In this document: in pieces, positions 1,178-63,062 of the stretch
Numbering within the stretch: position 1 is the stretch's first letter
Layout: each line of letters starts with the position of its first letter
From: Octopus bimaculoides
Taxonomy: Eukaryota
Assembly (NCBI RefSeq): GCF_001194135.2
Contig: NC_068981.1
Location: 79,182,547 to 79,246,546 of the forward strand
Length of the DNA: 64,000 bases
Direction: 5' to 3'
Position numbers and translations under genes: made by a program
The notes under the pieces: generated by a model
Database searches by the model: none
What the model saw: the letters and a program-made list of their open reading frames with translations, nothing else
What the model was told of the DNA's origin: nothing

Positions 1178-1755
1178 CAAGCTGTGATGTACAAGAGAGA
1201 TCAGTAGACTCATCCATTTGCAAGAGAATACCACAAAAATGTCCTAGCTTTCTCATGTATCTGTAACTGTATATTCTCTCCAAGTTCTTCTATTCTCCAC
1301 GCAACTGAATTTGCTGAAAGGCTGATACAGCCAAACATGTTAGCTTTTTCAGGACACAAGTCATTTGCTGCTTCCATCATGCACTCTTTTACAAAGTTTC
1401 CGTCAGTAAATGGTTTTCCTCGCTCTGCCAACTTATTCACTATTTTGTAACTTACATGAGTGATAGATTCATTTTCAACAAACATTTTCGTAAAGAAATT
1501 CCTTTGAGATTCCAAACTACATTTCATAGATTCAAATTTCTCAGACCGCAACTTTCCAGAATATTTAGAATGTGTTGAGAGATGTTTTGCTTCATAGTGA
1601 CGACAAATATTGTACTCCTTCATAACAGCAACACTTTTGTTGCATAGCAGGCAACTAGCTTTCTGGTCATTTGTTTCCACAAAGAAGTACTTTTCTCCCC
1701 ATTCTTTATTGAAAATGTGACATTCATCATCAACCTTTCTCTTCTTAGTAGCCAT
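1178..1755 (-). mobile_element. hAT (Buster/SPIN, GTF2IRD2-like) transposase N-terminal fragment
   Basis: MATKKRKVD...C LLC...RHYEAKH zinc finger, GKPFTDGNFVKECM, then a frameshift into DESTD..SQL (first catalytic D). Truncated against an RTE tail. Confidence 0.9.
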
Positions 1756-3020
1756 ACAATGGGTGAAGAAAAAAACCAAAAGCAGTCTTAGGCCTCGGCG
1801 TCAGATATTCTCGCTTTAATTGTAACTAGCAGGACCCGTAAATAATTCATGGAAAACAGAAAATGTAAGCATCTATAAACAGTGTACCGGTGCCATGAGA
1901 AATGTTTGCATATTATGACCGTCTGTCTTTACGTTCTGAGTTCAAATTCTTCTGAGGTCAACTTTACTTGTTGTCCTTTCGGGGTTGATAAATTAAGTAC
2001 CAGTTGTGTACTGGAGTCGATCTAATCAACTGGCCCCCTCCCCACAAAAATTTCAGGCCTAGAAAAGTATATTGTGACAGTTACAGAATATAGAAAGTAA
2101 TGTAACANNNNNNNNNNAATTTCAGGCCTAGAAAAGTATATTGTGACAGTTACAGAATATAGAAAGTAATGTAACACCAATGACTATATAATCCAACCAA
2201 AATATCTGTTACACAAACGTAAACAGAATTACTATTTAACCTTAAAATACACATACAAATAAAATGGTACATATTCAAAGAACCTTCTTGGTTAAGTGGT
2301 ACTGGACGTTTTCCTGGTATTCTTTTATTTGTTTGTCATTTCACTGTGGCCATGCTGGATCACCACCCTTTAGGCAAAATAATTGACCCCTGGACTTATT
2401 CTCGGTAAGCCTGGTGCTTATTCTATCAGTCTCTTCTGCTGAACAGCTAAACTACAAGGACGCAAACGCACCAACATTGGTTGTCAAGCAATGCTGGTGG
2501 TGGGACAAACACACACACAAACACACACTCATACATACATACATACATACATATATGATGGGCTTGGCGGTAGTGGTAATGCTGGCTGGTGCAATTTTGT
2601 GGCTTGCCGAGAGAGATACAGCAGGCACCTAACTGGTTCCCTGATCTTAAAGATGTAATGTGGATGTGTAATGATGGAGTGGCTGGTGTGCTGGTGATGC
2701 TAGGTGGTCTTCCTCACAGTACTTCATAATAGACAACATTTTGTGTGTATGTCACACCACATTTTTGGCCTTGTCTGTTACTCCAACTTTGTATCATTAC
2801 TCTTACTTTGATATTGTTCATAGCTCATGCTCTTGAAAATGCAAGATATAATTGGCCATGAGAAAATACTTTTTCAAATGTTTGCCCTTGAGCTTTATTA
2901 ATTATCATTGAATATGCAAGTCAAAGTGGAAACTGAAGTCTGTTTAGTGTGAATGGAATATTTGCATCACTTGGGCTAAGTTTAATTCTGGGAATTTTTT
3001 TTTTTTTTTTCCATTTTTTC

Positions 3021-16901: not shown

Positions 16902-17370
16902 CGGGCTTCTTTCAGTTTCCACCTACCATATTCACACACAAAGCTTTGATCAGTATAAGGCTATAAAAGTCACTTGCCCAAAGCACCATACAGTGAGGGA
17001 TGAACCTGAAACCATATGGTTGGGAAGGAAGCAAGCTTCTTAGCACACAACCATGCCTGCACTTATAATAATACTTTTATCAAATACCTTTTCAAACCAT
17101 TTAACCCTTTAGCATTTAAACCGGCCATATCCATCCCAAATATTCTACATGTTCAAACTGGCCAGATCTGGCATATCGTACCTACCCTACAATGTCATTC
17201 TAAGAAGAGACAATCACATCATCAAAATCTCGAGGCTACAAGATAATGCATGATTAATTCAAAATAATGTGAATAAACAAGCATTACTTTTGACAGAGTA
17301 ATATGAACACTGAAGGGTTCAAGGACATATATAGAGAGGTAAAGGTATAAATAAATAAAAAGATTCTTAC

Positions 17371-17471
17371 ACTGGCAATTATCTGTAGTGGTATAAAATG
17401 GTAAAATATAAGAATTCCAATCGCAACAAAAGCCCAGCTGAGGTCACTCATCTCTTCACATGTGTAGATAC
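17371..17471 (-). CDS. TMEM164: TMEM164 coding exon 4 (G-IYTCEEMSDLSWAFVAIGILIFYHFIPLQIIAS)
   Basis: 101 nt, phase 1-0, completing the split Gly codon from exon 3; acceptor tttacatAG, donor AGT|GTAAGA. Contains FYHF..LQI motif. Confidence 0.93.
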
Positions 17472-17631
17472 CTATGTAAATAAACATTTAAAAACAATTA
17501 AATTTTAAAGTAACATTACATGAAATCTGAGTCTTATTAACAGAATTTAACAAATAAAACGAAACACTTCTGATGAAACAAAGCTGATGAGTATCAAACT
17601 GTAATGACAAACAAATTAGTCTCATTTAAGT

Positions 17632-17870
17632 GAGTGCTTTTCAACCAGGGTCTGTCCATATGGCCCTTGGGGATCCATACAAGATTTTGTGAAAAATTTA
17701 TGTGCAATAAATTTCTTCTACAAAATATTTTAACAATTTTTTTTTATACAATTCCTAAAAAATATTTCATTATAAAAATTCAATAGGAATTTTTTAAAGC
17801 ACTGAATGGTTGTCAGGGTCCATCCAAGTAAAATAGAAATCAAAGAGGTTCGAAGGGTTGAGAAACACTG
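17632..17870. mobile_element. hAT MITE
   Basis: Ends GAGTGCTTTTCAACC / GGTTGAGAAACACTG; 8-bp TSD ATTTAAGT / ATTTAAAT. Confidence 0.8.
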
Positions 17871-17932
17871 ATTTAAATGGTAAAGGAACTGCTGGATCAC
17901 GTCACGTGTATGTAAATGCATACACACGCATG

Positions 17933-17971
<39 letters not shown>

Positions 17972-18021
17972 GGCATTACTACAGAATAATGCCACACACA
18001 CACACACACATATATATATTT

Positions 18022-18099
<78 letters not shown>

Positions 18100-18202
18100 C
18101 ACAGACACACACACACACACATCCGAGTTTAGCACCTAATGCATAATTAAAAATAAATGCTCATTTATCGAACATTTTTTTTTTAGCAAAAGTAACTAGA
18201 CG

Positions 18203-18232
18203 CTTTCACTTTACTCAGGGGCTTTCCGTTTC
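18203..18232. promoter_or_regulatory. Composite IRF / AP-1-like / NF-kB / IRF motif cluster
   Basis: CTTTCACTTT (minus AAAGTGAAAG) 18203-12; TTACTCA (minus TGAGTAA) 18211-17; GGGGCTTTCC (fits GGGRNYYYCC) 18218-27; minus GAAACGGAAAG 18222-32. Motif match only. Confidence 0.4.
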
Positions 18233-18699
18233 GCATGCTGTTTTACCGACCCTTTTATATACATATACAATATAAAATATAGTGTAAAGGTCATGATAAG
18301 TAATATTAGATATAAATTCACTTTACATATATATATATATATTAAAAAAGAAAAAAAATGTAAAGAGAAAGTTGTTCTAAAGTCCTACCTTTGAATATAA
18401 ATTTGCCATTTTTTGGCGGTATATAGTATCACAGACAGATCTTCAGGCCAAAATCTTTATTGATAAAATATAAACGAAGTCTTTTAACAGATCAAGTTTT
18501 CTGTCGGAGATGTATCAATATTTCTAAGAGGCCAGACAAAACTTTTTTTCCTTTTTGCTCAAAGATTTGGTTTCCCGACAAAATTTTCTCTTCTTTTTCT
18601 TTATCATTTTAACTTTTTGTACGCGTGTGTGGGGATTGTATGCGAGAGTTTTAAAGAAAATAATCAAAATACTATTAATATTATTTAGAAGTTGGATTG

Positions 18700-18891
18700 T
18701 CAACACCAGTGCCACGAGAGAAAACTGTCATTGCCTGTTATGAGCGTGACAATCATCATCGCCATTCCACCAAGAAGGAGAATAAACATAAAAGCCGCAA
18801 TAAACATTGATGTCATAACAAGGGTTGCTGCTAGCAAGCTAACTGCCAGTGTAGCTAACAGGACTTGAATAGTGTCAACCATAACCAGATT
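18700..18891 (-). CDS. Candidate nested exon encoding a 60-aa very hydrophobic peptide (MVDTIQVLLATLAVSLL...ITGNDSFLSWHWC*)
   Basis: Acceptor tttgtttctaatctcAG at 18893-92; ATG at 18882; TGA at 18702-00; non-repetitive sequence with ~45 nearly uninterrupted apolar residues. No recognised homolog. Confidence 0.4.
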   Translation of the reverse strand, partial: NLVMVDTIQVLLATLAVSLLAATLVMTSMFIAAFMFILLLGGMAMMIVTLITGNDSFLSWHWC

Positions 18892-19344
18892 CTGAGATTA
18901 GAAACAAACCACGATATAACAGACTAGTTAACTAATTTTGTCATATTCTGAATTTTTCCAATGTGACTAAGCTTTCATCGTTGTTTTTCACTTTTCTTAG
19001 AGGGAATGATGATCAAACAGAAAGATAGAAAGTTAAAAGCAATTTATGACGTGATGAAATTTTGTGAACTTATTTTTAACTGGATGAAGATGCTAGCTGG
19101 ATGAAATTCTAGATGAAGATGCTAGTTAGACAAAATAAGCGATGGAATGTTCTCCTGTAATTAAAAATTATATAGAGATAGGAAGAACGAGATAATTAAA
19201 GAGAGAGTACAGGAGGCTGTGAAATCAAACGATTCCAGATTATTAATGTGAATATTAAATCAGCTGAGACAGCAACAGCTTTCGGCTTTTTCCTTCATGA
19301 CGACGCAAAAACTTAGCCAAAGAATTCTTTAGTTACATAGTTAC

Positions 19345-19419
19345 CGATATTAGTAAACGAAAAAGAGCAAGCACAACACCTGTAAGAAATAAGAGAGCGG
19401 CTAGAATCCCCAACACCGA
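19345..19419 (-). other. Candidate 75-nt exon upstream of the hydrophobic ORF (SVLGILAALLFLTGVVLALFRLLIS)
   Basis: Acceptor ctctcactacacAG, donor TCG|GTAACT, phase 0-0, joining in frame to the 18891 acceptor. No upstream ATG found, so it may be UTR or chance. Confidence 0.25.
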
Positions 19420-19686
19420 CTGTGTAGTGAGAGCAGAGATGCATTGATGATAATCAGGACGGTGGGGAGTTAAAAATTAACAGGTTGGTTGCTATACAGT
19501 CCCTAAAGTAAAGCACATCAATTACACTTGACAATGAAAATAAAAACACTAGAACAAATATATGTATTAAAAAGAAAAGTAAATATTCCTACGAGGAATT
19601 AAAAAAAGAAAAGAACCACACACAGACACACAGACCGTAAGGGTATAATTTTAGAGAATTTTCAATCAAACTGTCTCGAAGGCATC

Positions 19687-19694
19687 TATTTATA
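19687..19694 (-). promoter_or_regulatory. TATA box (TATAAATA) candidate
   Basis: Canonical octamer on the minus strand, downstream of a CT-rich tract and followed by ACAGTT ~22 nt later, within the CpG-retaining island. Confidence 0.3.
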
Positions 19695-22550
19695 GTCAGA
19701 GAGAGAGATGGAGAGAGGAAGATTCTGAACACGTATGAAGTAAATGTAGAAGGTGATAAAGAAAAAGGAAAGAGTTGTAAACTTATATGTGAGTGAACAA
19801 AAGTATATTACAAGGTTTCATCAACCTACAAATTTAGATCAGTGGTTATTGAAACTAACTCCGTAACAAGTTTGCCTCTCGGCTGCCGAGTCTGGTGTTG
19901 TCAGTGCTACAATATCAAGTAGAGACAACTCTTTCATTACCAGACACTTCAGTGATTGCTCTTATGGAATATTTTGTTTCACTTGCAGGGCATTACGTTA
20001 TGTATTTGGGGTGGATACTTAATTCCATTTAACATCATTTTAAGATCAGTAATTTTTGAAGCTCATAGATTGGTTATTCAATTCTTTTTTTGTAATTATA
20101 TATTTTATATATAATTTTAAATAAGTTGAATAGCTATCGTTGTTTTTAATTTTTTATCAATAAATATTGTATTTTTTAATGAATTTCGATTTTTTAAAAT
20201 ACATTTTATCGTTTTATTCTTTATAAATCAATATGTCACTACAACAAGGATTCAAATATCATTAAGACAATCTGTCTTTTATCCTTCGATAATCATAAAA
20301 TGAGCACCAATAAGTCAAGTTGATTAAATTTGTGATCTAGTGGTAAAATTTAAAATATCAATATTTACAACAGTGTATCATTGAAGAAGGTTTTTGTTAG
20401 GTACAATGCTAGAACTATTTCTATTCAGAGTAGTGTGCCCTTTCAACAGCTGAAACTCCAGCATATGACACCAAACAAATAAAGAGCTGCTAGAACTATA
20501 TCAAGTATAGCAGGTAGACCTATACTTAACAAGAACTTATTTTAATGATTATATGGCTATCTTTGGAATATAGACAGCATATCTCTCATAGTAAACAACC
20601 TACAATAAAAGCATTATGATCATGGCTAGAACACTAACAATATAAGCTCAAAATTCTGTCATAAATCTGCATAAGCAGTACAGACAGAGCTAGTAAACAA
20701 TTAGATAGGCTATACAACCACAAGAAATAAACTAGTCAAAGATGGAGCTTCTATACAATCACCCACACATGTGGAATGATGTGGTCCTGGAAGCATTTTG
20801 TTTACATACAAGATGACATGGTTATAACTGAAACATGGCTCTGGTCAGTCAGTCAGTCAGTCAGTTAATTTGAGACCAAAATGTGATATGAACAGAAAGG
20901 ATATTTTTTCAAATCAATAAATAATTAAATATATAGGTTAATATTCTAATTATTGTTAGAAGTTTGGAATTGCTCAACAGTGGTTTTTGTGCAAGCTATT
21001 ATATTACATTTAAATACTTTATTGGAGATGATCTCTGTCTATACTAAAAAAAGTGTCATTCAGAAAAAAAGTATTTGTCAGAAATATGAATATAGCAATG
21101 ACCATTGTCTTTCTTTTCTTTTTTGTTGCTAGCAAACTGTTAGAATTGAATCATCATTTTATCAAGGGGTAAGACTAAATTCATGGAGGTAGATTTTCTA
21201 CAGACAGATGCAACAGTATGTTGTCGTCAACCAACACTTGTTCCCTATGCTCCCCCTTGGAAAACTGGAAACAATTGAAGCTGGTCGTATGATGGTGACA
21301 CGCATTTACAACTATCACGCAATGTCAAGATAAAGTGGCACAAACACATACACACATATATATGATGGGTTTCTTTCAGCTTCCATCAACCAAATCCACC
21401 CACACAGTGTTGGTTAGCCTAGTTCTATTATAGAAAACACTTGCTCATATACCATGCAGTGGAACTGAACCTGCAGCTTCTTAACCACACAGTCATACCT
21501 GTATTTTATGAATTTAAAAGCATTTTGGTAAAGTATTTAATAATTAATTTCATCATAGAATTGGAAGCATTTTTATGATATAATCACAACTTTCTTACAC
21601 TAATAATATACTAATTATTTTACAGTATCTATATTCTGATTCAGATTTACAGAGAAAAGCAAAATAACATCAATTTCCCCCACCATGTTAGTTAAACTCT
21701 TGTAGTCAGGTGTTCATTGAATTTTTGGATATATTCTTCCTTGCATAGTAATCAAATATCTTAGATAAGCCTCTCTCAGCAGTGAAGTAGTAGGTGAGAG
21801 ATTCTAAGCTTCAAAATCAGTTAATAGTATGATTGTTAGCTATGGAATGCTATACCAGTATAAGGGTGCTTATTTATAATTTGATGGGCTAATCTAGCAA
21901 TGATAAATTATAATATACTAATTAGCCAATAAGTCGCCACCTTCACTCAATTTACCTATGGCCCTCAATCTCCTGGGTAACAATTATTCTTAAGGAATAC
22001 AAGAATAGCTCTAAGAAGAAACAGCAAGGCCAGGACAGACTAAATGTTCAAGCAATATGTGTAAGTTAATGCAATGAGAAAGAAAACTATGCAAATCAAA
22101 ATAATGTTACAAACAACAAGTGATGTATATGTTTAATTCACTGATGAGAAGTAACATGAAAAAAACTCAGGGAGATGAAATTTGATCTGCAGGCAAACTA
22201 GCAATCAACAATATATCTTCATTGACAGTTTGCGTCCATTTTTCCATGCCAGCATGGGTTGGATATCTCGTTCGATTCCAAGTCAGTTCTTATTCAAAGT
22301 TACTGACTTCCTGGATACATTGTGGATCACATCTCAATCTCACTCATACACTCCAATACATTCTATTTTTGTCATGGTTATTACAGGTGGATGTCCTTCC
22401 TATTGCCTCCCATATTACAGAGTATACTGAGTGCATCTGATAGTGGAAGTGGCATTGGAGAGGTTAACTTGTCCCTAGCATGACTAAAGAGTACTCTCTA
22501 ACTATATATCATTTATCAATGCAGAGAGATTGTCTCATATCTGACAAGAT

Positions 22551-26881: not shown

Positions 26882-27110
26882 CAGAGATACCCTGTGCAGG
26901 AATGGTTGTATGGTTGAGAAGTGAACTTCTCAACCATGTGATTTTGAGTCCAGTCTCATTGCATAGCGCCTTGAGCTGGTGCATTCTACTATAGCTTCAG
27001 GCTAACCATTTCATCTTATGTCTGCTTGGTCAGGAATGATTTGGAGCTAAATAATCACAACACAAATATTGTAGAAATAACACACAAATTGTTATTAAGA
27101 AATAACTTAC

Positions 27111-27189
27111 CTCCCAGTCTCAGAAGATATATTGGAACAATCAACATTAAAGTATGTTGTAAGTAGTAGACTTCTTTTTCAAACACCAA
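27111..27189 (-). CDS. TMEM164: TMEM164 coding exon 3 (LVFEKEVYYLQHTLMLIVPIYLLRLG-G)
   Basis: 79 nt, phase 0-1; long polypyrimidine tract plus AG, donor G|GTAAGT. Contains YYLQH and VPIYLL motifs. Confidence 0.95.
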
Positions 27190-30142: not shown

Positions 30143-30544
30143 CTAAAAAAGCAACAAGTACAACCATTATTTCTATTTCATCTATAGATATATAACATGA
30201 AAATTGAACGAAAAGAGTTTTTTTAATCGTAAATGATCTTTTAGGACATAAAAAGTTTCATTTTCAAGTAGTGAAAGGACAAGTCAACCTGACAAAGCCC
30301 ATCTCTCTCCAATGTATAAATGATGCTGTGGTGGTGTTATTTTGTGCAAGGTCTACACAGTTGAGGCTCATTTATGTCAAAACCATTGCAGATGTGACCA
30401 TGTGGTCTTTACTTTTGAAAAGTAGTATAGGACTAGATTCTCGAGTCACTTGTTTTTTTAAGGTGTTTGGCAAGTAATTTGATGAAGATTTGCATACAAT
30501 TTCTAGCAGAACCAGAGACCATACTCTCTCCTTTTTTTTTTACT

Positions 30545-31010
30545 ATTTTTACTTGTTTCAGTCATTTGACTGTGGCCATGCTGGAGCACCGCCTTTAGTC
30601 GAAGAAGTCGACCACAGGATTTATTGTTTGTAAGCCTAGTACTTATTCTACCAGTCTCTTTTGCTGAACCGCTAAGTTACAGGGATGTAAACACGCAAGC
30701 ATTGGTTGTCAAGCGATGTTGGGAGACAAACACAGACACACAAACATATACACACACACACACACACACATACATATATACGATGGGCTTCTTTCAGTTT
30801 CCGTCTACCAAATCCACTCACAAGGCTTTGGTCGGCCCGAGACTATAGTAGAAGACACTTGCCTAAGGTGCTACTGTGTGGCACCTTGGCCAAGTGTCTT
30901 GAACCCAGAACCATGTGGTTGGTAATCAAGCTATTTACCACACAGCCTTACCTTGAACTCAGTGCCATGTGGTTGGTAAGCAAGCTACTTACCACACAGC
31001 CACTCCTGCA
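30545..31010 (-). mobile_element. Family A SINE with duplicated head segment
   Basis: Reverse complement of family A. Other partial copies near 2320, 3800, 4070, 16880, 21290, 26900, 28450, 29115, 32270, 33400, 35770, 36990, 42315, 53700. Confidence 0.85.
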
Positions 31011-35903: not shown

Positions 35904-35996
<93 letters not shown>

Positions 35997-37751
35997 CATG
36001 TGTGTGTGTGTATGTCCTGCCATCGCTTGGCAACTGAAGTTGGTGTGTTTACATCCCTGAAACCTAGCGGTTTGGCAAAAGAGACTGACAGAATAAGTTT
36101 CAGGCTTAAAAGAAAAACAAGTACTGGGCTTGATTCATTCAACTAAAAATTCTTCAAGTCAGTACCCCAGCATGACCACAGTCTAATGACTAAAACAAGT
36201 AAAGGTGAAGGATAAAGGATAATTTAAATGAGATTCAGTTGCTATTTCTAGTAAGTCAAGCAACCTCTTAGAGGTTCACTCTTTGCTTCATGGTGCTTGA
36301 ATTAGAATAAACAATCTCTTAGTCTACATACTTCTTAAACTAAAAGTAGAATTATTGTCACTGAATCCCAATTAGCCTTGATCAAGCTTGACTTTATGAT
36401 AAAAGGCAATCCATCCTGGATTTTATATCATGAAATCTTATTAAGTCTAATCCTTCTTTACTTTTGCCTTTTCTGTATATTTAAGACTATATTATTCAAT
36501 GTGTCCTTCCTGTTTGAAGATGGCTCAATGTTACTCAAGAGATTTTAGCTGCTATTACTAGCAAAATGAGTGACCATATAGATGCTCCCCTTGTCAGTGC
36601 TTTATGAAGGTATTTGGTTATCATTTTATTTCACCAAAATAGACATTTGGACATTTTGTACTAATTAAAATAGCAATTTCAGATTTTGACAATGTTAGAG
36701 GAAGGATGTTAGTCAATGGCATTGACCACAGTGCTCAACTGGAACGCATTCTATTGACCCCAAAAGAATGGAAGGCAAAGGTGACATGGCAGAATTTGAA
36801 CTCAGAATGTGAAGATCCAGAAGAAATGGCAACAAACATTTTGTCTGACATAGTAACAATTCTGCCAGCTCACTGGTGTATTAATTGAAGTTATTCAGAT
36901 AATTAATTAATATTTTTATCCAATCATATAATTAATTATTTCTAGTTAACTTTTAAATGCTTTCTGTGTTAAATATATTAACACTAACTCTTTTACTTGT
37001 TTCAGTCATTTGACTACGGCCATGCTGGAGCACCGCCTTAAGTCGAGAAAATCAACCCCAGGACTTATTCTTTGTAAGCTTAGTGCTTAATCTATCGGTC
37101 TCTTTTTCCGAACCACTAAGTTACGGGGACGTAAACACACCAGCATCGGTTGTCAAGCGATGCTGGGGGGGCAAACACAGACACACAAACACATATATAT
37201 ATATANNNNNNNNNNTCCATCTACCAAATCCACTCACAAGGCTTTGGTCGGCCCGAGGCTATATTAGAAGACACTTGCCCAAGGTGCCATGCAGTGGGAC
37301 TGAACCCGGAACCATGTGGCTGGTAAGCAAGCTACTTACCACACAGCCACTCAAATGGGGTCATAACTCCAAAATATTGAATACAAGGTAAGTCTACATT
37401 AATTCATATATTTGTTTTCTTGTGATTTACTTTGCATTTACTTTGCATTATTTTGGCCTTACCCACGATCCTTTATACACTATTAAATTTATCTAGTCTG
37501 GTGCTTTACTAAAATTTCATAGGGATTGGATTTGTCAGTCATTTTTATCTGAGTTTACAATACTAGATCGTTGTTGGTCTACTATATTTCTGTTATATAC
37601 CTTACCATGCATATATACATTTTGTGAGTAGGTTTTCTAACTGATGGGAATGGGGATATGCAACCCAAGGGTTCCATGAAAGACTATTTGGGGTTCCAAG
37701 AATTACATGCAAATGCATTTTCCAGTCACTTTTGTGTGAGTTTAACTTAGC

Positions 37752-41273: not shown

Positions 41274-43497
41274 TTGCACACACATATACACATAGTTTGA
41301 TATATATGTATAGAAGTTCAATGCACCTATTTTCATGAATACATATTCAACAAGCCATAAATGGAAGATGACCTAACAATGTTATGCAATATACACCAAA
41401 TTTCTCTTTCAGACACATCAGGAACATTAATATGACAGGAAAAGATACATCGTGGACATGGTTCTAACTGCTAATCATAGCAAGTCAGAGATTATCAACT
41501 TCTTGAATGTAACCAGTTTCTTTCTGCTCAAGGCTAGAAAAGAACTGAAGGCCTCTAATGGAAACATACCATTCACGGCTTCTCAACAATCAAATATGAT
41601 CAGAATGTTGAATTCATCCTGCAGGCCCATACTATATACCCAGGCTGACCAAAGCCTTGTAAGTGGATTTCATCATCATCATCGTCGTCATCGTTTAACA
41701 TCCACCTTCCATGCTGGCATGGGTGGGATGGTTTGACAGGATCTGGCCAGGCAGAAGCCTGCACCAGACTTGTGTGTCTGTTTTGGCAGGATTTTTACAG
41801 CTGGATCCCCTTCCTAACACCAACCACACATCTTAGTGCTTTTTATGTGGCACAAGCACAGGCAAGGTTAATTTTGGACAGGTTTTTTTTACAGTTGGAT
41901 GTCCTTCCAAATGTCAACCACTAATAGATGGAAATTGAAAGAAGCCCATTGTGTGTGCATGCGTGTGTGGGTGTGTGGTAAGAAGTTTGATTCCCAGTTA
42001 CATGGTTCTCCATTCAGTCCTACTGCATGGCACCTTGAGCATGTGTCTTCTACTATAGCCTCAGGCTGACCAGAGAATTGTTAGAGTTTTTCCATACAGT
42101 TTCCGTGAACCAATTCTACTCATGAGGAATTGGTTGGACTGAGGCTACATAGTAGAAGATACTTTCCAAGAAGCCATATGGTGAAACAGAATCCAAAAAG
42201 AGATATTTATGAAGCAACCTCCATATCGACATTGTCAAACATGGGCAGGTAGTTGTTTTTGGGTTTTAGCTGACAGCAATGGAAAACTCTTATAAGAAAA
42301 CCTTAATACATATATCTTTTACTTGTTTCAGTCATGAGACTGTGGTCATGCTGGAGTACCATCTTGAAGAATCTTTTAGTTGAATGAATCAACCACTGCA
42401 CTTTTTTCTTAAGCCTGGTACTTATTCTGTCGGTTTTTTTTTGGTTTTTTTTGCTGAACAGGGATGTACAAACAACAATACCAGTTGTTAAGCGGTGGTA
42501 GGGGACAAACACAAACACACACACATATATGATGAGCTTCTTCCAGTTTCCATCTACCAAATCCACATACAAGGCTATAGTAGAAGACACTTGCATGAGG
42601 TGCCACAGACATGCAGTAAAACTCCTTGAAGAAGAAACACTCAAAAATCAAACTTCTCCTGACCCATGAGTACCCTTTTATTGGATATGACAAGGAAAAG
42701 CCTATGATCTGTAACTACTTACCTTTGGCTGGATATTTGACTAAGAACACTTAAAGAATAACATATATGTTGTTCAAGTTTATGTCACAATAATCCATTG
42801 ATTTACAAATGTCTCATCAACTAATTCAGCAAACAGAGCTTGAGTGAACAATGAATAATTCATTATATATATATATNNNNNNNNNNACTCCCAATAAATT
42901 TGTTGAGTGCCCTTCTTTTGTTTGTCCACTCACTTGCGTATGTGTGTGTATGTATGTATATATATATGCAGATATGTCTATACACATATAGTAAATACTC
43001 ACATACATAAAAACGTATACGCATGTACACATGCATGCATACATACATGCATACATACATTCATACATACATAAACACAAATATATCATGAAATAACTGT
43101 TACTTCCTCAGATGCAGCACAAAGTTTTGTCAGTGAACAGGTCACAGTTTCAAAGCAATGAAAATATTTTGACAAATTAAATTTAAATGTTGAAGTGAAA
43201 CTAACAGTTTTTGTATGTTCTTAAATGGCTTACAAACATCTTCCACAATGCAATTGTATATATATATATATATATATNNNNNNNNNNNNNNNNNNNNNNN
43301 NNNNNNNNNNNNNNNNNNNNNNNNNNNNNNNNNNNNNNNNNNNNNNNNNNNNNNNNNNNNNNNNNNNNNNNNNNNNNNNNNNNNNNNNNNNNNNNNNNNN
43401 NNNNNNNNNNNNNNNNNNNNNNNNNNNNNNNNNNNNNNNTATATATATATATATACAGTTAAGAGTACATGTGTCTATGTATGTGTACATGTATATA

Positions 43498-46673: not shown

Positions 46674-47060
46674 GGCGCAGGAGTGGCTGTGTGGTAAGTA
46701 GCTTGCTTACCAACTACATGGCTCTGGGTTCAGTCCCACTGCGTGGCACTTTGGGCAAGTGTCTTCTACTATAGCCTCAGGCCAACTAAAGCCTTGTGAG
46801 TGGATTTGGTAGATGGAAACTGAAAGAAGCCCGTCGTATATATGTATATGTATTTGTGTCTGTGTTTGTCCCTCCAACATCACTTGACAGCTGATGCTGG
46901 TGTGTTTACGTCCCCATAAGTTAGCGGTTCGGCAAAAGAGACCAATAGAATAAGTACTAGGTTTACAAAGAATAAGTCCTGGGGTCGATTTGCTCGACTA
47001 AAGGTGGTGCTCCAGCATGGCCACAGTCAAATGACTGAAACAAATAAAAGAGTAAAAGAG
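46674..47060 (+). mobile_element. Full-length tRNA-headed SINE, family A
   Basis: GGCGCAGGAGTGGCTGTGTGGTAAG head, GGGTTCAGTCCC B box, CCTTGGGCAAGTG-type core, internal (TA/TG)n, tail GCATGGCCACAGTCAAATGACTGAAAC. Confidence 0.9.
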
Positions 47061-47484: not shown

Positions 47485-48541
47485 ATCAAACCCATGCCAG
47501 CATGAAAAATGAATATATGGCAAGGAGGAGGAGGAGGAGCATAACCATGGCAATGACAACAACAATGACATGTTGGTTGTTATTGCATAAAAAAATTTAT
47601 TAGCTTCGTATAACAGTAGTAGGAAACAACACGATAAAGCTGAAGAAATTTACCAATTCTGTGAGGTAAAGTCAGAGTGAGTTTCATTAGATGAGGATAA
47701 GAACAGAAAAGCAAATATTCTCTCAGTCTTAGTTTTGAAGATATATAAGTGAAAACAGAAGATAAGCAAAAGCAAGTGTAATGCATGCATCTACATGGAA
47801 TACAAATAAACAAAAGAAATAATATAGTCTACTACATCATTCCTTTTGTTTATCAGTATTCCATGTAAATACACTAATTTGCCTATTTTTATTATCTGCT
47901 TCTTTTACTTCCATACTCACTCAATGCAGATCATTCTTATGATCAACTTCCTACACTCAGGAGCCACCTGCTGTGAATGAAGAAGTTGGAATTTTAAGTT
48001 TTCATTATTTGAGAACTATTTGGTGACTATTTATATCATGCTGCTTTAGTGTTCTCCAACACACACACACACACACATACATACTTTCTCTGTGTGTGAA
48101 TATACCAATCTGTACTTTTCAGCTCATCCTACTATTAACATAACAAAAGTGTTTCCTCCTTTTTTTTATGATTTGGATCTATGTGCAGCAGATTTTTATT
48201 CTAATAATAGTCAGATGCCTGGTGAAATGGTTGGTATTTTTCTATGACATTACACATAAATTATGAATAAAATGCCATGCTATAGAAACATATGTAGCAT
48301 GGACTGAACTGCTAATTTCCATTCCTCTTATTGTGTGTGCACACACATCAACACAGTGATCAAAATGGTAATGTTAGCTATGATTATGATGACATTAACA
48401 ATAATGATAACTGTGTAAAATGACAATACTAATTGTCAAAGACGATGATGATAAACATGCTCAGTATGGTTTTAATGCTAGCATTTATAACAACAATAAT
48501 AACAATAGTAACAAATATCAGAACAAAGAAACATGGCTTAC

Positions 48542-48862
48542 CTGCACGATAGTAATAATATGACAGGGGTTTAGTACCCAGATCATTTGCTGGGTAGCCA
48601 ACTTAAATCCCAGTTCAATACCAAATACTAAACAATGTGTGATGAGCAAAAGTCTTTTTATTATTGAAGTTCGTTCAATCCAGTTCGGCAATTGTTTTGG
48701 TATGACGATATTCCTATATCCACGAGTTATAAACTTTATTGAAATCACCATTGCAAAAATACTTTCCACAACACGCTGAAATCCACTGAGGAATTTCAAA
48801 CAGTCACGCCCCCCATTTCCAGGAATATTGTAGTCCACGCCAGCGTAGGTCCAGTCTAACAT
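48542..48862 (-). CDS. TMEM164: TMEM164 coding exon 1 (aa 1-107, MLDWTYAGVDY...VLNPCHIITIVQ)
   Basis: Translation matches the TMEM164 N-terminus (LDWxYxGVD, GNGGxDC, FGxExGFK, LNPCH). Acceptor tctccttAG ends at 48895; an in-frame TAA lies upstream of ATG 48862 (AAGATG); donor CAG|GTAAGC at 48542/48541, phase 0. Confidence 0.95.
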
Positions 48863-49827
48863 CTTGAAACTATTCAATGAAACTTCTTAAATACCTAAGG
48901 AGACAAAAGAAAAAAAGATAATAAAATAAAATATATCCTGATTTATAATATTATTATTATTATTGCATCATGGAAGAACAAGTTAGCCATTCAGTTGCTG
49001 CATGGAAGACAGAACCAGCTATCAACCAAGTCCATCACGATCACCCTGCCACCCTTCTTTAACAGGGTAGGGCAGGCAATTTTCCTCTGTCAAATGGCTA
49101 TGGATAAAGAGGTTGTGTGGTGGATGAAGAGTCAAAGGACTGAGGACTGACACTTTCCACTTTAGTCAAACCTTTGTCAACATTTTCAAGTTCCACTTAG
49201 AAAGGAAGATGAAACTGGAAAGACAAATGCCTGCCTTCAGTGAATTTGTCAAAAGATGGGTGACTAGTGAAAATGGCAAGAATAGCTGAAACTATTCTAA
49301 GCATGCAGATGGAAGTTATAGAACAACTATTTGTGAGAGGGAACCTGCACATAATGGTTAGAATGTTCTTGGATCAGTCAGAAACCTGAGTGGCCCTAGT
49401 TGGATGTCTTCCTGCATAGCAAGACAAGAGGACTGTAATATCTATGCATTTGTATATTATGTATACTCTTTACCACATATTTTTCTCATTCAATTCTTTT
49501 GCAAATCTACAAAACTTAACATACCCTGTCCTTGAAATGACTCCTTTATTCAACATTATCATGGCAAACAGAAAAAACTGTTGTTGTTGTTGTTGTTGTT
49601 GTTATGGTTATTATTATTAAGGTGGTGAGGTGGCAGAATTGTTAGCACACTGAATAAAATACTCAGTGTCATTTCATCCATCTTTATTGTTTGGAGTTCA
49701 AATTCTGCCAAGGTTAGCTTTGCCTTTCATCCTTTCAGGATTGATAAATTAAGTACCAGTGAAACATTGGGGTTGATGTAATTGACTAGTCTCCTCCCCC
49801 AAAACTTCAGGTCGTGTGCATTTAGTA

Positions 49828-50155: not shown

Positions 50156-50872
50156 CTTTGGTAGAAAGGATTATAATAATAATTATTATTATTATTATTG
50201 AAGGCAGCAAGCTGGTATACAACAGTAGTAAGAAAAGATTGACACTTACTGTTTAGCCCCAGGTCAGATCTGGTTAAATACACAAATGATCACAGACATT
50301 CTGTTCATCACCATCCCAACTTATGATAGTAGTATAACCAAAGGGGAGGGGACTAGTTGATTACATCGACCCCAGTGTTTCACTGGTACTTAATTTATCG
50401 ACGTCAAAAGGACAAAAGGCAAAGTCGACATTGGTGGAATTTGAACTCAGAACATGAAGTTAGATGAGAGAACGTGCACTTACTTTCTTTTTAAGATGAT
50501 AGGGTAAGATCTGAGCAAATTTCAGCTACTATATTTAGCAGGTTGAATGCAACCATGCAAAAGCCTCCTTCATTTACTAGGATGACTGTCATCAAATGGT
50601 AGAGCAAAAAATTTTTAAAAAATAAAATCAAATCAAAACCTCTGAACGTCACATTATAATCTAACATCATTTGCAGAAGATGAGTCAAGGTGTCAGTGAA
50701 GACATGTTAGTGAGCTTACTGACTCCTGCTTATGCTATCAAGCTCTCTACTAGACAAACCCTGCAGGTAGGTAGATTAATGAAGAGGAGGCCTAGGATGA
50801 ACTAGTGACAATAGTCATGAAATACATCAATATGCGAATATTCCAACTGCATTACTTAAATAGTGGTAGAAC

Positions 50873-56800: not shown

Positions 56801-57285
56801 ATTTTGCCCAGCATGCTAACTATTCTTCCAGTTTGTCACCTTAGAGTCTATGAATATATTAAACATAAGTATAACACACATAAGTATATTTATATATTAC
56901 ATATGTGGCAATATCATATTAAGTTATAATCAAGTTCATGTATATATATATATATTGGAGACACAAAGGTATTAGTTGTCCAGATCATATAACTGTAAAT
57001 AAATATTACTGAGAGAAAGAATTTGTTGCCAAAAGCTGTAACATTAGTGTGAAATTGATAAACATTTCATTAGATTTTCAATGCTAACTTCAACTCCATT
57101 TTTTAGTGTAACTTGGAGAATGAAGAGCTCCGACATGCTATCTTGTCACAAACATGAAAAAATGTTCAGTTGTGACTCCACAACCTTGAGGAGTTTTGCC
57201 AAACAGCAAATACGTGTCTCTATGTCTATAGGATTTAAATATTGATCTAAAACCTCAAATTACATTTACATATTAAGCAGCTATA

Positions 57286-57677
57286 GGCATAGGAATGGCT
57301 GTGTGGTAAGTAGCTTGCTTACCAACCACATGGTTCCGGGTTCAGTCCCACTGCATGGCACCTTGGGCAAGTGTCTTCCACTATAGCCTCGGGCCGACCA
57401 AAGCCTTGCGAGTGGATTTGGTAGACGGAAACTGAAAGAAGCCCGTCGTATATATGTATATATATATTTTTGTATGTGTGTTTGTGCTTGTCCCCCCCAC
57501 CATCACTTGACAACCAATGCTGGTGTGATTGCATCCCCGTAACCTAACGGTTTGGCAAAAAGAGACCGATAGAATAAGTACTAGGCTTACAAAGAATAAG
57601 TCCTGGGGTCGATTTGCTCAACTAAAGGCGGTGCTCCAGCATGGCTGCAGTCAAATGACTGAAACAAGTAAAAGAGT
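57286..57677 (+). mobile_element. Full-length family A SINE with TSD
   Basis: Same structure as 46674; flanks TATTAAGCAG / TATTAAACAG. Confidence 0.9.
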
Positions 57678-58264
57678 ATTAAACAGTCATTCCTATATTG
57701 AATTCTGTTCCCTTTTTTCAATAGGCTCAATACAACCTTGCCTTTGCCCCTTAATTTACTGCCTCCTGTGAATCCCTATCTCTAAACCCTACTTCTTCAC
57801 ACACATCCGCAGTCCAAATTAAGTACTGACCATTAGCCAACATCAAAACCATTATCTTTCTTGACTTCTCATTTGAACCAATCTGTACTCCTCCTGCCTA
57901 GAACTGAATGTTACTTTGTTGAAGGCTTCACTTCACACACTTCAGTCAATAAGATTATTTCATATGCATGCACAGACAAACATATATATACGTTTTACAC
58001 ACATGCCACATTGTGTGTGTGTACAGAAAGAAAGCAAGAAGGCTGTACAGAACTGAAGATAATGAAAATAGTCAGAGATGTTTGATGGATCATATATTCA
58101 CCACCATTACATCCCCCACTCCAGCCAAGGTTAGTTAGCACTAGTGGTGGTGGGGTTATACAGCCACAAAACCCACAGCTCCAATTACACATTTTCTTGT
58201 ACACAGAAATGTTGCCACCACTTTCAGGTTGTTGGAACTGCTTTGTATTACTACAGTAGCAAAC

Positions 58265-62392: not shown

Positions 62393-62655
62393 TGTGTGTG
62401 AGTGAGTGCGTGCGTGCAGTGGAGGTGAATGAAAGTTTAGAACACTGATCTCAATAAATGTACTTTACATCCCGCAATATGTGACATAGTATAATTTTTG
62501 TTCCATTTCAATTTGCCCATGTATATGAATTCCTAAAGGTCAGGTCAATGATACTACTTGATGCCAGTGAGAGTGGGGAAGGAGAAGTAGAACACACTTG
62601 AACTCATCAAAAACTATGATATTCAAAAGTGATGAACAAAGACAGAATACACAGA

Positions 62656-62825
62656 GGCGTAGGAGTGGATGTGTGGTAAGTAGCTTGCTTACCAACCACA
62701 TGGTTCTGGGTTCAGTCCCACTGCGTGGCACCTTGGACAAGTGTCTTCAACTATAGCCTTGGGTAACCAAAGCCTTGTGAGTGGATTTAGTAGACAGAAA
62801 CTGAAAAAAACCCGTCGTATATATG

Positions 62826-62869
<44 letters not shown>

Positions 62870-63062
62870 TCCCCCTAACATCGCTTGACAACCGATGCTG
62901 TTGTGTTTAGGTCCCCATAACTTAGCGGTTCAGCAAAAGACACAGATAGAATAAATACTAGGCTTACAAAGAATAAGTCCTGGGGTCGATTTGCTCGACT
63001 AAAGGCAGTACTCCAGCATGGCCACAGTCAAATGACTGAAACAAGTACAAGAGTAACGAGTA
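62656..63062 (+). mobile_element. Full-length family A SINE
   Basis: Near-identical to the 46674 and 57286 copies. Confidence 0.9.

Follow-up and report, generated by a model that had tools for sequence, protein, structure and literature searches.

Annotation routinely misses small-ORF genes. Transmembrane micropeptides include phospholamban, sarcolipin, sarcolamban and DWORF, which regulate SERCA, as well as mitoregulin. Vertebrate intragenic ('orphan') CpG islands mark internal promoters. In octopus genes with broad expression, gene-body methylation is the usual state, TSS regions of octopus genes are unmethylated, and O. bimaculoides has been profiled by WGBS and RRBS (PMC9476566).

Here we analyzed a 64-kb stretch of Octopus bimaculoides DNA ('the window'; GCA_001194135.2, CM046601.1, 100% identity). 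We found a CpG-retaining patch in the TMEM164 intron that separates exons C and D, and it likely marks a small protein-coding gene which has escaped annotation and is nested in this intron, on the strand of the host. Like the micropeptides named above, the predicted 60-residue product has fewer than 100 residues, is nearly all membrane helix by prediction, shows selection at the peptide level, and comes from a gene too small for standard annotation to pick up. However, it has no sequence relationship to them (no Pfam and no HMMER match), its hydrophobic run of ~44 residues has the length of a hairpin rather than of a single span, basic flanking residues are absent, and the C-terminus is a conserved aromatic-Cys one. 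The Pmp3/RCI2 family and V-ATPase subunit e are comparable in size (50–80 aa), extreme hydrophobicity and possible helical hairpin, but share no detectable homology with the octopus peptide, which lacks the conserved motifs of both. Membership in known micropeptide or proteolipid families (phospholamban, sarcolipin, Pmp3, others) was rejected, as no profile match was significant.

As in nested intronic genes of other animals, the coding unit lies wholly in one host intron and the arrangement is conserved across species, whereas the octopus guest is tiny, shares the strand of its host, has an intronless coding part, and has an independent transcript by prediction only. Like orphan CpG islands and the unmethylated TSS regions of octopus genes, the patch is a discrete CpG-retaining domain in a gene body that is CpG-depleted and presumably methylated, and it keeps its position across species. 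Unlike them, it has a low G+C content, its methylation state is deduced from substitutions, and its promoter activity is predicted. The locus is not a new kind of biology; nested genes, micropeptides and unmethylated promoters inside genes have all been described before. In the literature collection searched, there was no paper on small ORFs of cephalopods.

A CpG-retaining domain in a TMEM164 intron

Comparison with O. bimaculoides TMEM164 (tblastn) places the TMEM164 exons on the minus strand of the window. Exon C (27109–27180; residues 150–173, 100% identity) is the upstream boundary of the host intron and exon D (17366–17472; residues 173–207, splice sites read from the DNA) the downstream one. 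Both the CpG patch and the 60-codon ORF, which has the same strand as the host, are inside this intron. The first-pass annotation had described positions 18121–20290 as a CpG-retaining island inside a depleted gene body, and its counts of 38 versus 5 CpG were reproduced. Positions 18121–19900 contain 38 CpG (observed/expected ratio, o/e, 0.77), 18121–20290 contain 43 (o/e 0.78), and 20291–22150 contain only five (at 21225, 21286, 21301, 21318 and 21935); the whole window has 493 (o/e 0.24). When 1.78-kb intervals were scanned in 50-nt steps over the whole 64 kb, CpG o/e had a maximum of 0.77, at the patch, a median of 0.21 and a 95th percentile of 0.46, and the 15 top values all overlapped the patch. 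The entire domain around the small gene that appears free of a methylation footprint extends over 17851–20290. A microsatellite blurs its downstream edge.

TpG and CpA occur at 1.01 and 1.09 of expectation in the patch versus 1.33 and 1.34 elsewhere in the window. Hence, the deamination signature raised elsewhere is absent from the patch. In all, ~2.2–2.4 kb around the ORF have been spared the CpG-to-TpG/CpA decay that stripped the rest of the TMEM164 gene body. By the criteria used for vertebrate CpG islands (G+C of at least 50% and o/e of at least 0.6 over at least 200 bp), only the o/e of the patch is in range. Its G+C is 32–33%, so that the patch is an island of CpG o/e and not a vertebrate-type CpG island.

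CpG retention across species

Between O. bimaculoides and O. sinensis, 37 of the 43 CpGs of the patch are kept (86%) versus 54 of 154 (35%) in the non-coding TMEM164 gene body elsewhere (Fisher test, P-value = 2e–9), where 70 of the 100 losses read TG or CA. GpC, in contrast, is kept at 88% in the patch and 82% outside. The position of the patch has the top CpG o/e of the locus in all three genomes with the whole locus (O. bimaculoides, O. sinensis and O. vulgaris). The patch itself has an o/e of 0.97 in O. sinensis, 1.0 in O. vulgaris and 0.82 in a fourth octopodid, represented by Logan contigs L001–L004. Values of 0.77–1.0 against 0.2–0.45 for depleted surroundings are what a germline-unmethylated domain in a mosaic-methylated invertebrate genome would show. 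In Argonauta hians the TMEM164 gene body is only mildly CpG-depleted throughout (o/e 0.55), and for this reason no distinct patch is visible there.

One could expect that a patch which is partly coding or conserved would keep its CpGs by ordinary sequence constraint, or that chance fluctuation produced the pattern, with no link to methylation. However, the coding share is only 183 of ~2200 nt and the patch diverges from O. sinensis as fast as the flanking intron does (89% versus 87–92% identity), so general constraint does not explain the retention. The effect is also specific to CpG and recurs at one position in three independent genomes, which makes constraint or chance very improbable. The pattern fits a long-standing methylation-free domain, with CpGs kept like GpCs inside and hypermutable outside. 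We consider it quite probable, judging by these substitution patterns, that the patch is a germline-hypomethylated domain, which would have stayed unmethylated in the germline over time while the host gene body was methylated. It may thus represent a clean natural case of a methylation-free domain long kept in a methylated invertebrate gene body, and as such would bear on how gene-body methylation gets targeted and excluded.

The most likely cause of the unmethylated state would be an internal promoter or other bound regulatory region of the small gene. Bound regulatory regions can keep methylation out within methylated gene bodies, and an intronic enhancer or other bound element serving TMEM164 or a neighbor gene might do the same, with the small gene merely lying within the patch. 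Several short non-coding blocks conserved to Argonauta, and motifs predicted to be compatible with transcription-factor binding, agree with an enhancer. On the other hand, the patch is centered on the small gene and coextensive with it (from ~1.4 kb upstream of the ATG to ~0.6–0.8 kb past the stop), it keeps its place around the ORF in three species, and an enhancer leaves the coding signature unexplained. We regard an enhancer with the gene as bystander as improbable. The enhancer and nested-gene readings are not mutually exclusive.

A 60-codon ORF conserved at the protein level

The ORF occupies 18700–18882 on the minus strand including the stop (CM046601.1:79,201,246–79,201,428) and encodes a hydrophobic micropeptide of 60 aa (MVDTIQVLLATLAVSLLAATLVMTSMFIAAFMFILLLGGMAMMIVTLITGNDSFLSWHWC). 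It is unannotated: none of the gene models recorded for four octopod assemblies in the collection searched covers it. The start codon, read as ATGG, follows CTGGTT (18883–18888, minus strand), which gives G at –3 and G at +4. Similarity to Argonauta begins here, 6 nt before the ATG, and fades within a few bases of the TGA stop.

The 60-codon frame has neither indel nor stop in O. bimaculoides, O. sinensis, O. vulgaris, the fourth octopodid and Argonauta hians, and in the four of these with genome assemblies (all but the fourth octopodid) TMEM164 exons C and D flank it. O. sinensis and O. vulgaris encode the same protein as O. bimaculoides, and the 11 nucleotide differences are all synonymous and at third positions (0 non-synonymous). 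The fourth octopodid has 93% protein identity, with seven synonymous and four conservative non-synonymous differences (dN/dS 0.155). Non-synonymous changes are thus 4 of 11 versus ~74% expected without selection (P-value = 0.009), and there are 0 indels versus ~4 expected (P-value = 0.016). In Argonauta hians protein identity is 90% and 26 of the 34 differences fall at third positions (dS ~1.4, dN 0.056, dN/dS 0.04). The ORF has been under strong purifying selection since before the argonaut/octopus divergence, and judged by its substitutions it is very probably a real, translated coding gene. None of the other ORFs in the patch has this coding pattern. In the limpet Lottia gigantea the orthologous TMEM164 intron (820 nt) lacks the ORF, and the exact peptide was absent from assembled runs of three Octopus species in the collection searched.

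The proposal of a compact nested gene around a 60-codon minus-strand ORF is thereby borne out by a coding signature in five octopod sequences, and the suggested synteny check found the ORF in the same TMEM164 intron in O. sinensis, O. vulgaris and Argonauta hians. Taken as a whole, the first-pass annotation is partly supported: in the protein-coding gene nested in TMEM164, but not in the detailed gene model (a 75-nt exon, its splicing, and flanking motifs). A compositional cue alone, CpGs kept within an otherwise CpG-depleted gene body, pointed the way to a gene whose coding signature is unambiguous. If the nested-gene reading is true, CpG-retention footprints in CpG-depleted invertebrate genes could be used systematically for unannotated nested genes, which suggests a cheap genome-wide screen for such hidden genes in mosaic-methylated invertebrates.

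The high CpG content could by itself also be expected of a young TE or viral insertion with CpGs still undecayed, the alternative raised at first reading; nothing else was found in favor of an insertion. No octopod examined has an empty orthologous site, both O. sinensis and O. vulgaris match the whole patch colinearly at this site, synonymous sites of the ORF are saturated relative to Argonauta hians, and CpGs are kept across species at the GpC rate. Neither the window nor any of three other loci of 57–61 kb has a second copy of the patch. Its only repeats are microsatellites; we found no TIR, LTR, TSD or other terminal repeats, no TE domain (Pfam), and no relative in viral and prokaryotic collections. 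The remark that the patch has no recognizable TE was correct, while a recent insertion is refuted by conserved synteny, and we give it practically no weight.

Transcript structure and flanking elements

We lean slightly towards a predicted intronic promoter belonging to the small gene over a transcript derived from TMEM164. The ORF starts at its own ATG and has no coding sequence in common with TMEM164. An in-frame stop is present 5–8 codons before the ATG in every species checked, which prevents any in-frame entry into the ORF from upstream, contrary to the idea of an acceptor splicing in frame into it. A TMEM164 protein isoform was rejected, given this stop, the lack of similarity between the peptide and the TMEM164 protein, and the early stops that a splice to exon D produces. 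The proposed short TMEM164 isoform fails likewise, as ORF and host have neither coding sequence nor frame in common.

The AG/GT-bounded segment of 75 nt at 19345–19419 (minus strand), put forward as a splice-bounded exon, is present but is not coding. The fourth octopodid has a 1-nt insertion that shifts its frame, and O. sinensis loses the acceptor AG and has Pro in place of Leu, Ala and Arg. The two conserved ends of the segment are ~95 nt apart in Argonauta versus 22 nt here. A conserved 25-nt block, CTCTCTTATTTCTTACAGGTGTTGT (19373–19397, minus strand), is 92% identical to Argonauta L008 38940–38964 and near-invariant in four Octopodidae sequences, the fourth species differing at 2 of 25 positions. 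It can be read as a strong splice acceptor (19381) or as an E-box (CAGGTG), and both fit equally well.

Three further non-coding blocks on the minus strand are conserved to Argonauta. One lies 53–106 nt upstream of the ATG (18935–18988; colinear, 83% to L008 41430–41483, E = 2.5e–10), another ~200 nt upstream of the ATG (19063–19120; colinear, 77% to L008 40836–40900). The third (18368–18440), colinear with the ORF in Argonauta, ends in a donor-like AAG/GTAGGA (site 18388), which reads GTATGA in Argonauta.

Instead of an independent nested gene, the ORF might be carried on an alternative TMEM164 transcript. It could form an internal alternative first exon, spliced from the donor-like 18388 to exon D, or an intronic-polyadenylation isoform, entered at the acceptor-like 19381 and ending at the AATAAA at 18461–18456. 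The ORF does share the strand of its host, the acceptor-like block at 19397–19373 and the donor-like site are both conserved to Argonauta, and we found no upstream first exon that has a conserved donor. However, an ORF behind a truncated TMEM164 frame is not normally translated, yet this one is under strong protein-level selection. No conserved frame results when 18388 is spliced to exon D, the acceptor-like block reads equally well as an E-box, and the methylation-free footprint suggests a regulatory region inside the intron. An alternative host transcript therefore seems unlikely to us.

The transcript of a nested gene with its own promoter would probably end, in Octopus species, at the AATAAA at 18461–18456 (minus strand), a candidate polyadenylation signal 239 nt past the stop codon that is followed by a GU-rich stretch. 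This signal, named in the first-pass annotation, is present and together with its flanks identical in four Octopodidae sequences, but it is not kept at the aligned Argonauta position. The sole non-genome sequence, Logan L001–L004, is an unspliced contig bounded by a microsatellite at either end; it extends past the AATAAA and may be genomic DNA.

The candidate TATA box TATAAATA (19687–19694, minus strand) is present where it was reported, but it is one of 16 TATAAATA in the window, is replaced by CATAAATA in both O. sinensis and O. vulgaris, and lies in a region with no detectable match in Argonauta; a function is unsupported. A TSS near 19665 would give a leader with several upstream ATGs. 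The kB/IRF-like cluster (18203–18232, minus strand; GGGGCTTTCC at 18218–18227, GAAACGGAAAG at 18232–18222) was also located correctly, but is at chance level or derived from repeats: the window has 2 kB-like sites versus 2.4 expected by chance, and 8 of 11 ISRE-like matches belong to the tail of one SINE family. A known non-coding RNA (miRNA, snoRNA or tRNA) was rejected, with no model match and no conserved hairpin. A hairpin at 18350–18460 is not conserved, Rfam gave only sub-threshold, microsatellite-driven matches, and no tRNA was found.

The predicted peptide

Residues 5–48 of the 60-residue peptide form one unbroken hydrophobic stretch (GRAVY 1.62 for the peptide). Lys and Arg are absent, and the C-terminal SWHWC is conserved. 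An AlphaFold model has helices at residues 2–49 and 53–59 with a mean pLDDT of 86, and the peptide would insert into the membrane as a helical hairpin or as one long helix. A Pfam search of peptide and patch returned nothing below E = 0.8. A HMMER profile run against 1.84 billion representative proteins retrieved only its own ortholog, an ORF of a fifth octopod.

By its composition, and by analogy with other transmembrane micropeptides, the peptide could tentatively be assigned to a membrane protein or complex as a small subunit with an accessory or regulatory role, the best guess among functions though a doubtful one. TMEM164 is a membrane lipid acyltransferase, and a co-located hairpin peptide could thus be its lineage-specific partner or regulator. 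More speculatively, and rather against our expectation, the peptide might be the first representative of a family of ultra-hydrophobic membrane micropeptides restricted to octopods, or possibly to cephalopods, that would be expressed from a methylation-protected promoter in a methylated gene body and maybe be functionally coupled to the host. As predicted, it is a new, deeply conserved octopod membrane peptide open to functional study. The peptide (90% in Argonauta hians) is more conserved than the TMEM164 protein of its host (78%).

A CpG-retaining patch in a TMEM164 intron

The coding exons of TMEM164 lie on the minus strand of the window: A (48862-48539), B (30130-30023), C (27180-27109), D (17472-17366) and E (6991-6578). 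The window matches CM046601.1 (GCA_001194135.2) at 100% identity, and window positions convert to that record by adding 79,182,546. The CpG-retaining patch (18121-20290) is located within the ~9.6-kb intron C-D and starts ~650 nt upstream of exon D; the gene and the features listed for the patch in the first-pass annotation share one strand. The remainder of the window holds reverse-transcriptase fragments, a repeated SINE, a zinc-finger ORF and assembly gaps.

We reproduced the reported CpG counts: 38 CpG in 18121-19900 (observed/expected ratio, o/e, 0.77) versus 5 in 20291-22150. The full patch contains 43 CpG, and the whole window 493 (o/e 0.24). When all 1.78-kb windows are ranked by o/e, every one of the top 15 overlaps the patch (median 0.21, 95th percentile 0.46). 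Inside the patch, TpG (1.01) and CpA (1.09) match expectation, but outside they are elevated (1.33 and 1.34), hence the patch lacks the deamination signature. With a G+C content of only 32–33%, the patch is an island of CpG ratio, not of base composition. A 29-nt tandem duplication (2.1 copies, 19083-19144) precedes the ORF described below; 17 nt of this duplication are missing in the fourth octopodid (contigs L001-L004, below).

A conserved 60-codon ORF nested in the intron

We searched a 60-codon ORF of the patch (18882..18700, minus strand) against 5.8 billion proteins and found one match, an unnamed 60-aa protein (P0001, 93% identity); absences from this word-indexed search are weak evidence, as a query with exon A missed O. 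bimaculoides TMEM164, which a later query recovered. A HMMER profile of the peptide found nothing besides P0001 among 1.84 billion representative proteins, no relative appeared in viral, prokaryotic and metagenomic collections, and the ORF matched no Pfam family. For the four assemblies in the collection searched, no gene model over the ORF is on record. The protein family has not been described before.

The sequence of P0001 lies on Logan contigs of 1.58 kb (L001-L004); their four sequencing runs (SRR11869384, -390, -391 and -394) come from a related octopodid, the fourth octopodid of these comparisons. We used the contigs only as related-octopodid sequence and not as expression evidence. The contig is colinear with 19635-18101 of the window (90% identity at aligned positions, 30 indel events), and both its ends are (GT)n microsatellites, as in the window. 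Within the ORF there are 0 indels where ~4 are expected (P = 0.016), and the substitutions are 7 synonymous and 4 conservative non-synonymous, with ~74% non-synonymous expected without selection (P = 0.009).

We compared the TMEM164 loci of three further genomes. O. sinensis and O. vulgaris encode the identical protein between their own exons C and D, and each of the 11 nucleotide differences from O. bimaculoides falls at a third position and is synonymous. In Argonauta hians (locus L008) the ORF occupies 42405-42584, between exons C (35908-35988) and D (50455-50553). The Argonauta peptide is 90% identical, third positions account for 26 of the 34 nucleotide differences, and dN/dS is 0.04 (dS ~1.4, dN 0.056). 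Octopus-Argonauta similarity sets in 6 nt before the ATG and fades within a few bases of the stop codon. The TMEM164 host protein is only 78% identical between O. bimaculoides and Argonauta. The remaining 20 ORFs of the patch lack a coding pattern. In the limpet Lottia gigantea, the orthologous intron (only 820 nt) contains no counterpart of the ORF.

Judging from these comparisons, the 60-codon ORF is very probably a real gene, with a peptide predicted to be translated. The proposed nested gene is supported by the coding signature, and the synteny check suggested for this intron places the ORF at the orthologous site in O. sinensis, O. vulgaris and Argonauta hians. The alternative of a recent insertion is refuted, because the patch is single-copy in the window without terminal repeats and the ORF sits in the same intron across species.

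A short TMEM164 isoform had also been considered. An in-frame stop lies 5–8 codons upstream of the ATG in all species checked, and in Argonauta no AG occurs between this stop and the ATG. Hence, the peptide has an ATG of its own as its start and, in terms of coding, is no isoform of TMEM164.

Exon and motif model of the first-pass annotation

The motifs named in the first-pass annotation are all where it placed them, but taken one by one they say little, and the detailed exon, promoter and motif model built on them is not supported. The 75-nt segment (19419-19345) is present but was rejected as a coding exon in frame with the ORF: the fourth octopodid has a 1-nt insertion that shifts the frame, in O. 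sinensis the acceptor AG is gone and Pro takes the place of Leu, Ala and Arg, the segment's conserved ends are ~95 nt apart in Argonauta versus 22 nt in O. bimaculoides, and an in-frame stop precedes the ATG of the ORF. The presumed TATA box TATAAATA, a word with 16 occurrences in the window, is likewise present but altered in two relatives (CATAAATA in O. sinensis and O. vulgaris). AATAAA is identical together with its flanks in four Octopodidae sequences but is not preserved in Argonauta.

The proposed IRF/kB cluster, as a sign of immune regulation, was rejected. kB-type sites are at chance level in the window (2 versus 2.4 expected), and 8 of 11 matches to the ISRE-like word GAAANNGAAAG in the window are the tail motif of a SINE family. 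Similarity between the patch and this SINE past the 11-mer was not convincing. The SINE-like repeat is ~400 bp long and present in many copies (30538-30947, 36987-37352, 46681-47053, 57284-57697 and 62648-63062), with tail motifs at 16909, 28568, 29229, 30791, 35886, 38015, 46816 and 57428. Its 3' end, GGAAACTGAAAGAAGCCCGTC, is directly joined to a TA/TG microsatellite.

Age and putative methylation state of the patch

The patch position has the top CpG o/e of the 60-kb locus in O. sinensis, 0.97 against a median of 0.44, and likewise in O. vulgaris, 1.0 against 0.43; in the fourth octopodid, o/e at the patch is 0.82. In an alignment of the O. bimaculoides gene with that of O. sinensis, we tracked each dinucleotide. 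In the patch 37/43 CpG are kept (86%; GpC 88%), versus 54/154 (35%; GpC 82%) in the remaining non-coding gene body (Fisher's exact test, P = 2e-9). TG or CA replaces 1 of the 6 CpG lost in the patch and 70 of the 100 lost elsewhere. The patch as a unit diverges as fast as its flanks do (89% identity versus 87–92%), so the retention effect is specific to CpG and does not reflect general constraint. Relative to the fourth octopodid, CpG and GpC in the patch are retained equally (72% and 67%); with this species as outgroup, CpG loss in the patch on the O. bimaculoides lineage is essentially zero.

Published methylomes of O. bimaculoides place 5mC mainly on gene bodies, those of a subset of genes with high and broad expression; transcription start sites are spared, and the pattern stays stable from tissue to tissue (PMC9476566). 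On the simplest reading of the substitution patterns, TMEM164 would belong to the body-methylated genes, and the ~2.2–2.4 kb of the patch would have escaped germline methylation for at least as long as the compared Octopus species have been separate. Judged by its substitutions, the patch is as old as the small gene and behaves like unmethylated DNA. Overall, the original observation is confirmed, and the comparative evidence supports the suggestion of a nested gene marked by a germline-unmethylated patch. Nested genes, transmembrane micropeptides and intragenic unmethylated domains are kinds already known. We regard the locus as a small but solid discovery, open to testing, and as a useful illustration that CpG footprints can uncover hidden genes in mosaic-methylated invertebrates.

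At 9–12 patch sites (18125-19625), CpG in O. sinensis and O. vulgaris corresponds to TG or CA in both O. bimaculoides and the outgroup octopodid, which points to CpG gains in the sinensis/vulgaris lineage. Three of these gains are synonymous T-to-C changes within the ORF. Such gains help account for the higher o/e of the two species (0.97–1.0 versus 0.77); GC-biased change is one candidate cause. The gene body of Argonauta (L008, 57 kb) is only mildly CpG-depleted, so that no distinct patch stands out. Its o/e of 0.55, versus 0.24 in the window and 0.46 in O. sinensis and O. vulgaris, suggests that Argonauta TMEM164 has had a methylation history unlike that of the same gene in Octopus.

Properties of the peptide

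The peptide (MVDTIQVLLATLAVSLLAATLVMTSMFIAAFMFILLLGGMAMMIVTLITGNDSFLSWHWC) is strongly hydrophobic (GRAVY 1.62), with a single unbroken hydrophobic run over residues 5–48, two Asp, no Lys or Arg, and an invariant C-terminal SWHWC. An AlphaFold model from a two-sequence alignment (mean pLDDT 86) consists of a helix at 2–49 and a short helix at 53–59. The 44-residue run exceeds one membrane span; it could either turn back on itself as a tight helical hairpin or form one long helix at a tilt. By analogy, the peptide might tentatively be cast as a small subunit that assists or regulates a membrane protein or complex. The host TMEM164 is a membrane acyltransferase, and a functional link between the two is possible.

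Conserved non-coding blocks and transcript architecture

Octopus and Argonauta share five short, colinear non-coding blocks: 19438-19420 (a pyrimidine tract, then CAG or TAG), 19397-19373 (CTCTCTTATTTCTTACAGGTGTTGT, a strong acceptor or E-box), 19120-19063, 18988-18935 and 18440-18368, the last ending in a donor-like AAG|GTAGGA (GTATGA in Argonauta). Promoter elements, untranslated exons and splice signals are all conceivable roles for them.

The small gene would, by a modest preference, have its own intronic promoter and a 3' end at AATAAA. Alternatively, the ORF could be carried by a TMEM164-linked transcript, either from an internal first exon (18388) to exon D or as an intronic-polyadenylation isoform, which we consider unlikely. 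The independent promoter is favoured since the peptide can be translated as predicted only if its ORF is the first substantial one on the mRNA, and since an internal regulatory region is what the methylation-free footprint indicates. The L001-L004 contig is unspliced and extends past AATAAA; it may be genomic DNA.

On the minus strand, 18368-18408 contains a conserved ATG in good context plus 7 codons (MANLYSK; MAKLCSK in Argonauta), then a donor-like GT. As an alternative first coding exon of TMEM164 ending before 18388 it was rejected, since splicing to exon D leads to early stops in both Octopus and Argonauta. We also rejected a pre-miRNA-like hairpin at 18350-18460 (single-sequence fold z = –1.6), which has a weak four-species consensus fold (–5.6 kcal/mol) with zero compensatory pairs. 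No known RNA families or tRNA-derived elements were found.

Host gene and neighbouring sequence

At the first coding exon of the host the CpG signal is only modest, with o/e 0.62 in a single 500-bp bin (48501-49000). Nowhere upstream of exon A in the window is o/e as high as in the intronic patch, hence the host promoter either lies beyond the window or retains CpG less well than the patch does. A cephalopod TMEM164 cDNA contig (L009, Logan SRR27666063, 905 nt) has exons D and E spliced and, upstream of exon D, unspliced intron sequence (end ...ccataaag), which accounts for the spurious N-terminus of the protein called from it (P0006). This sequence represents either retained intron C-D or an internal start in that species. 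Downstream of TMEM164, a 189-aa ORF (1210-1779, minus strand) matches the Spin-doc zinc-finger domain (PF18658, E = 2e-7) and is probably a piece of a domesticated or decayed transposon-derived gene.
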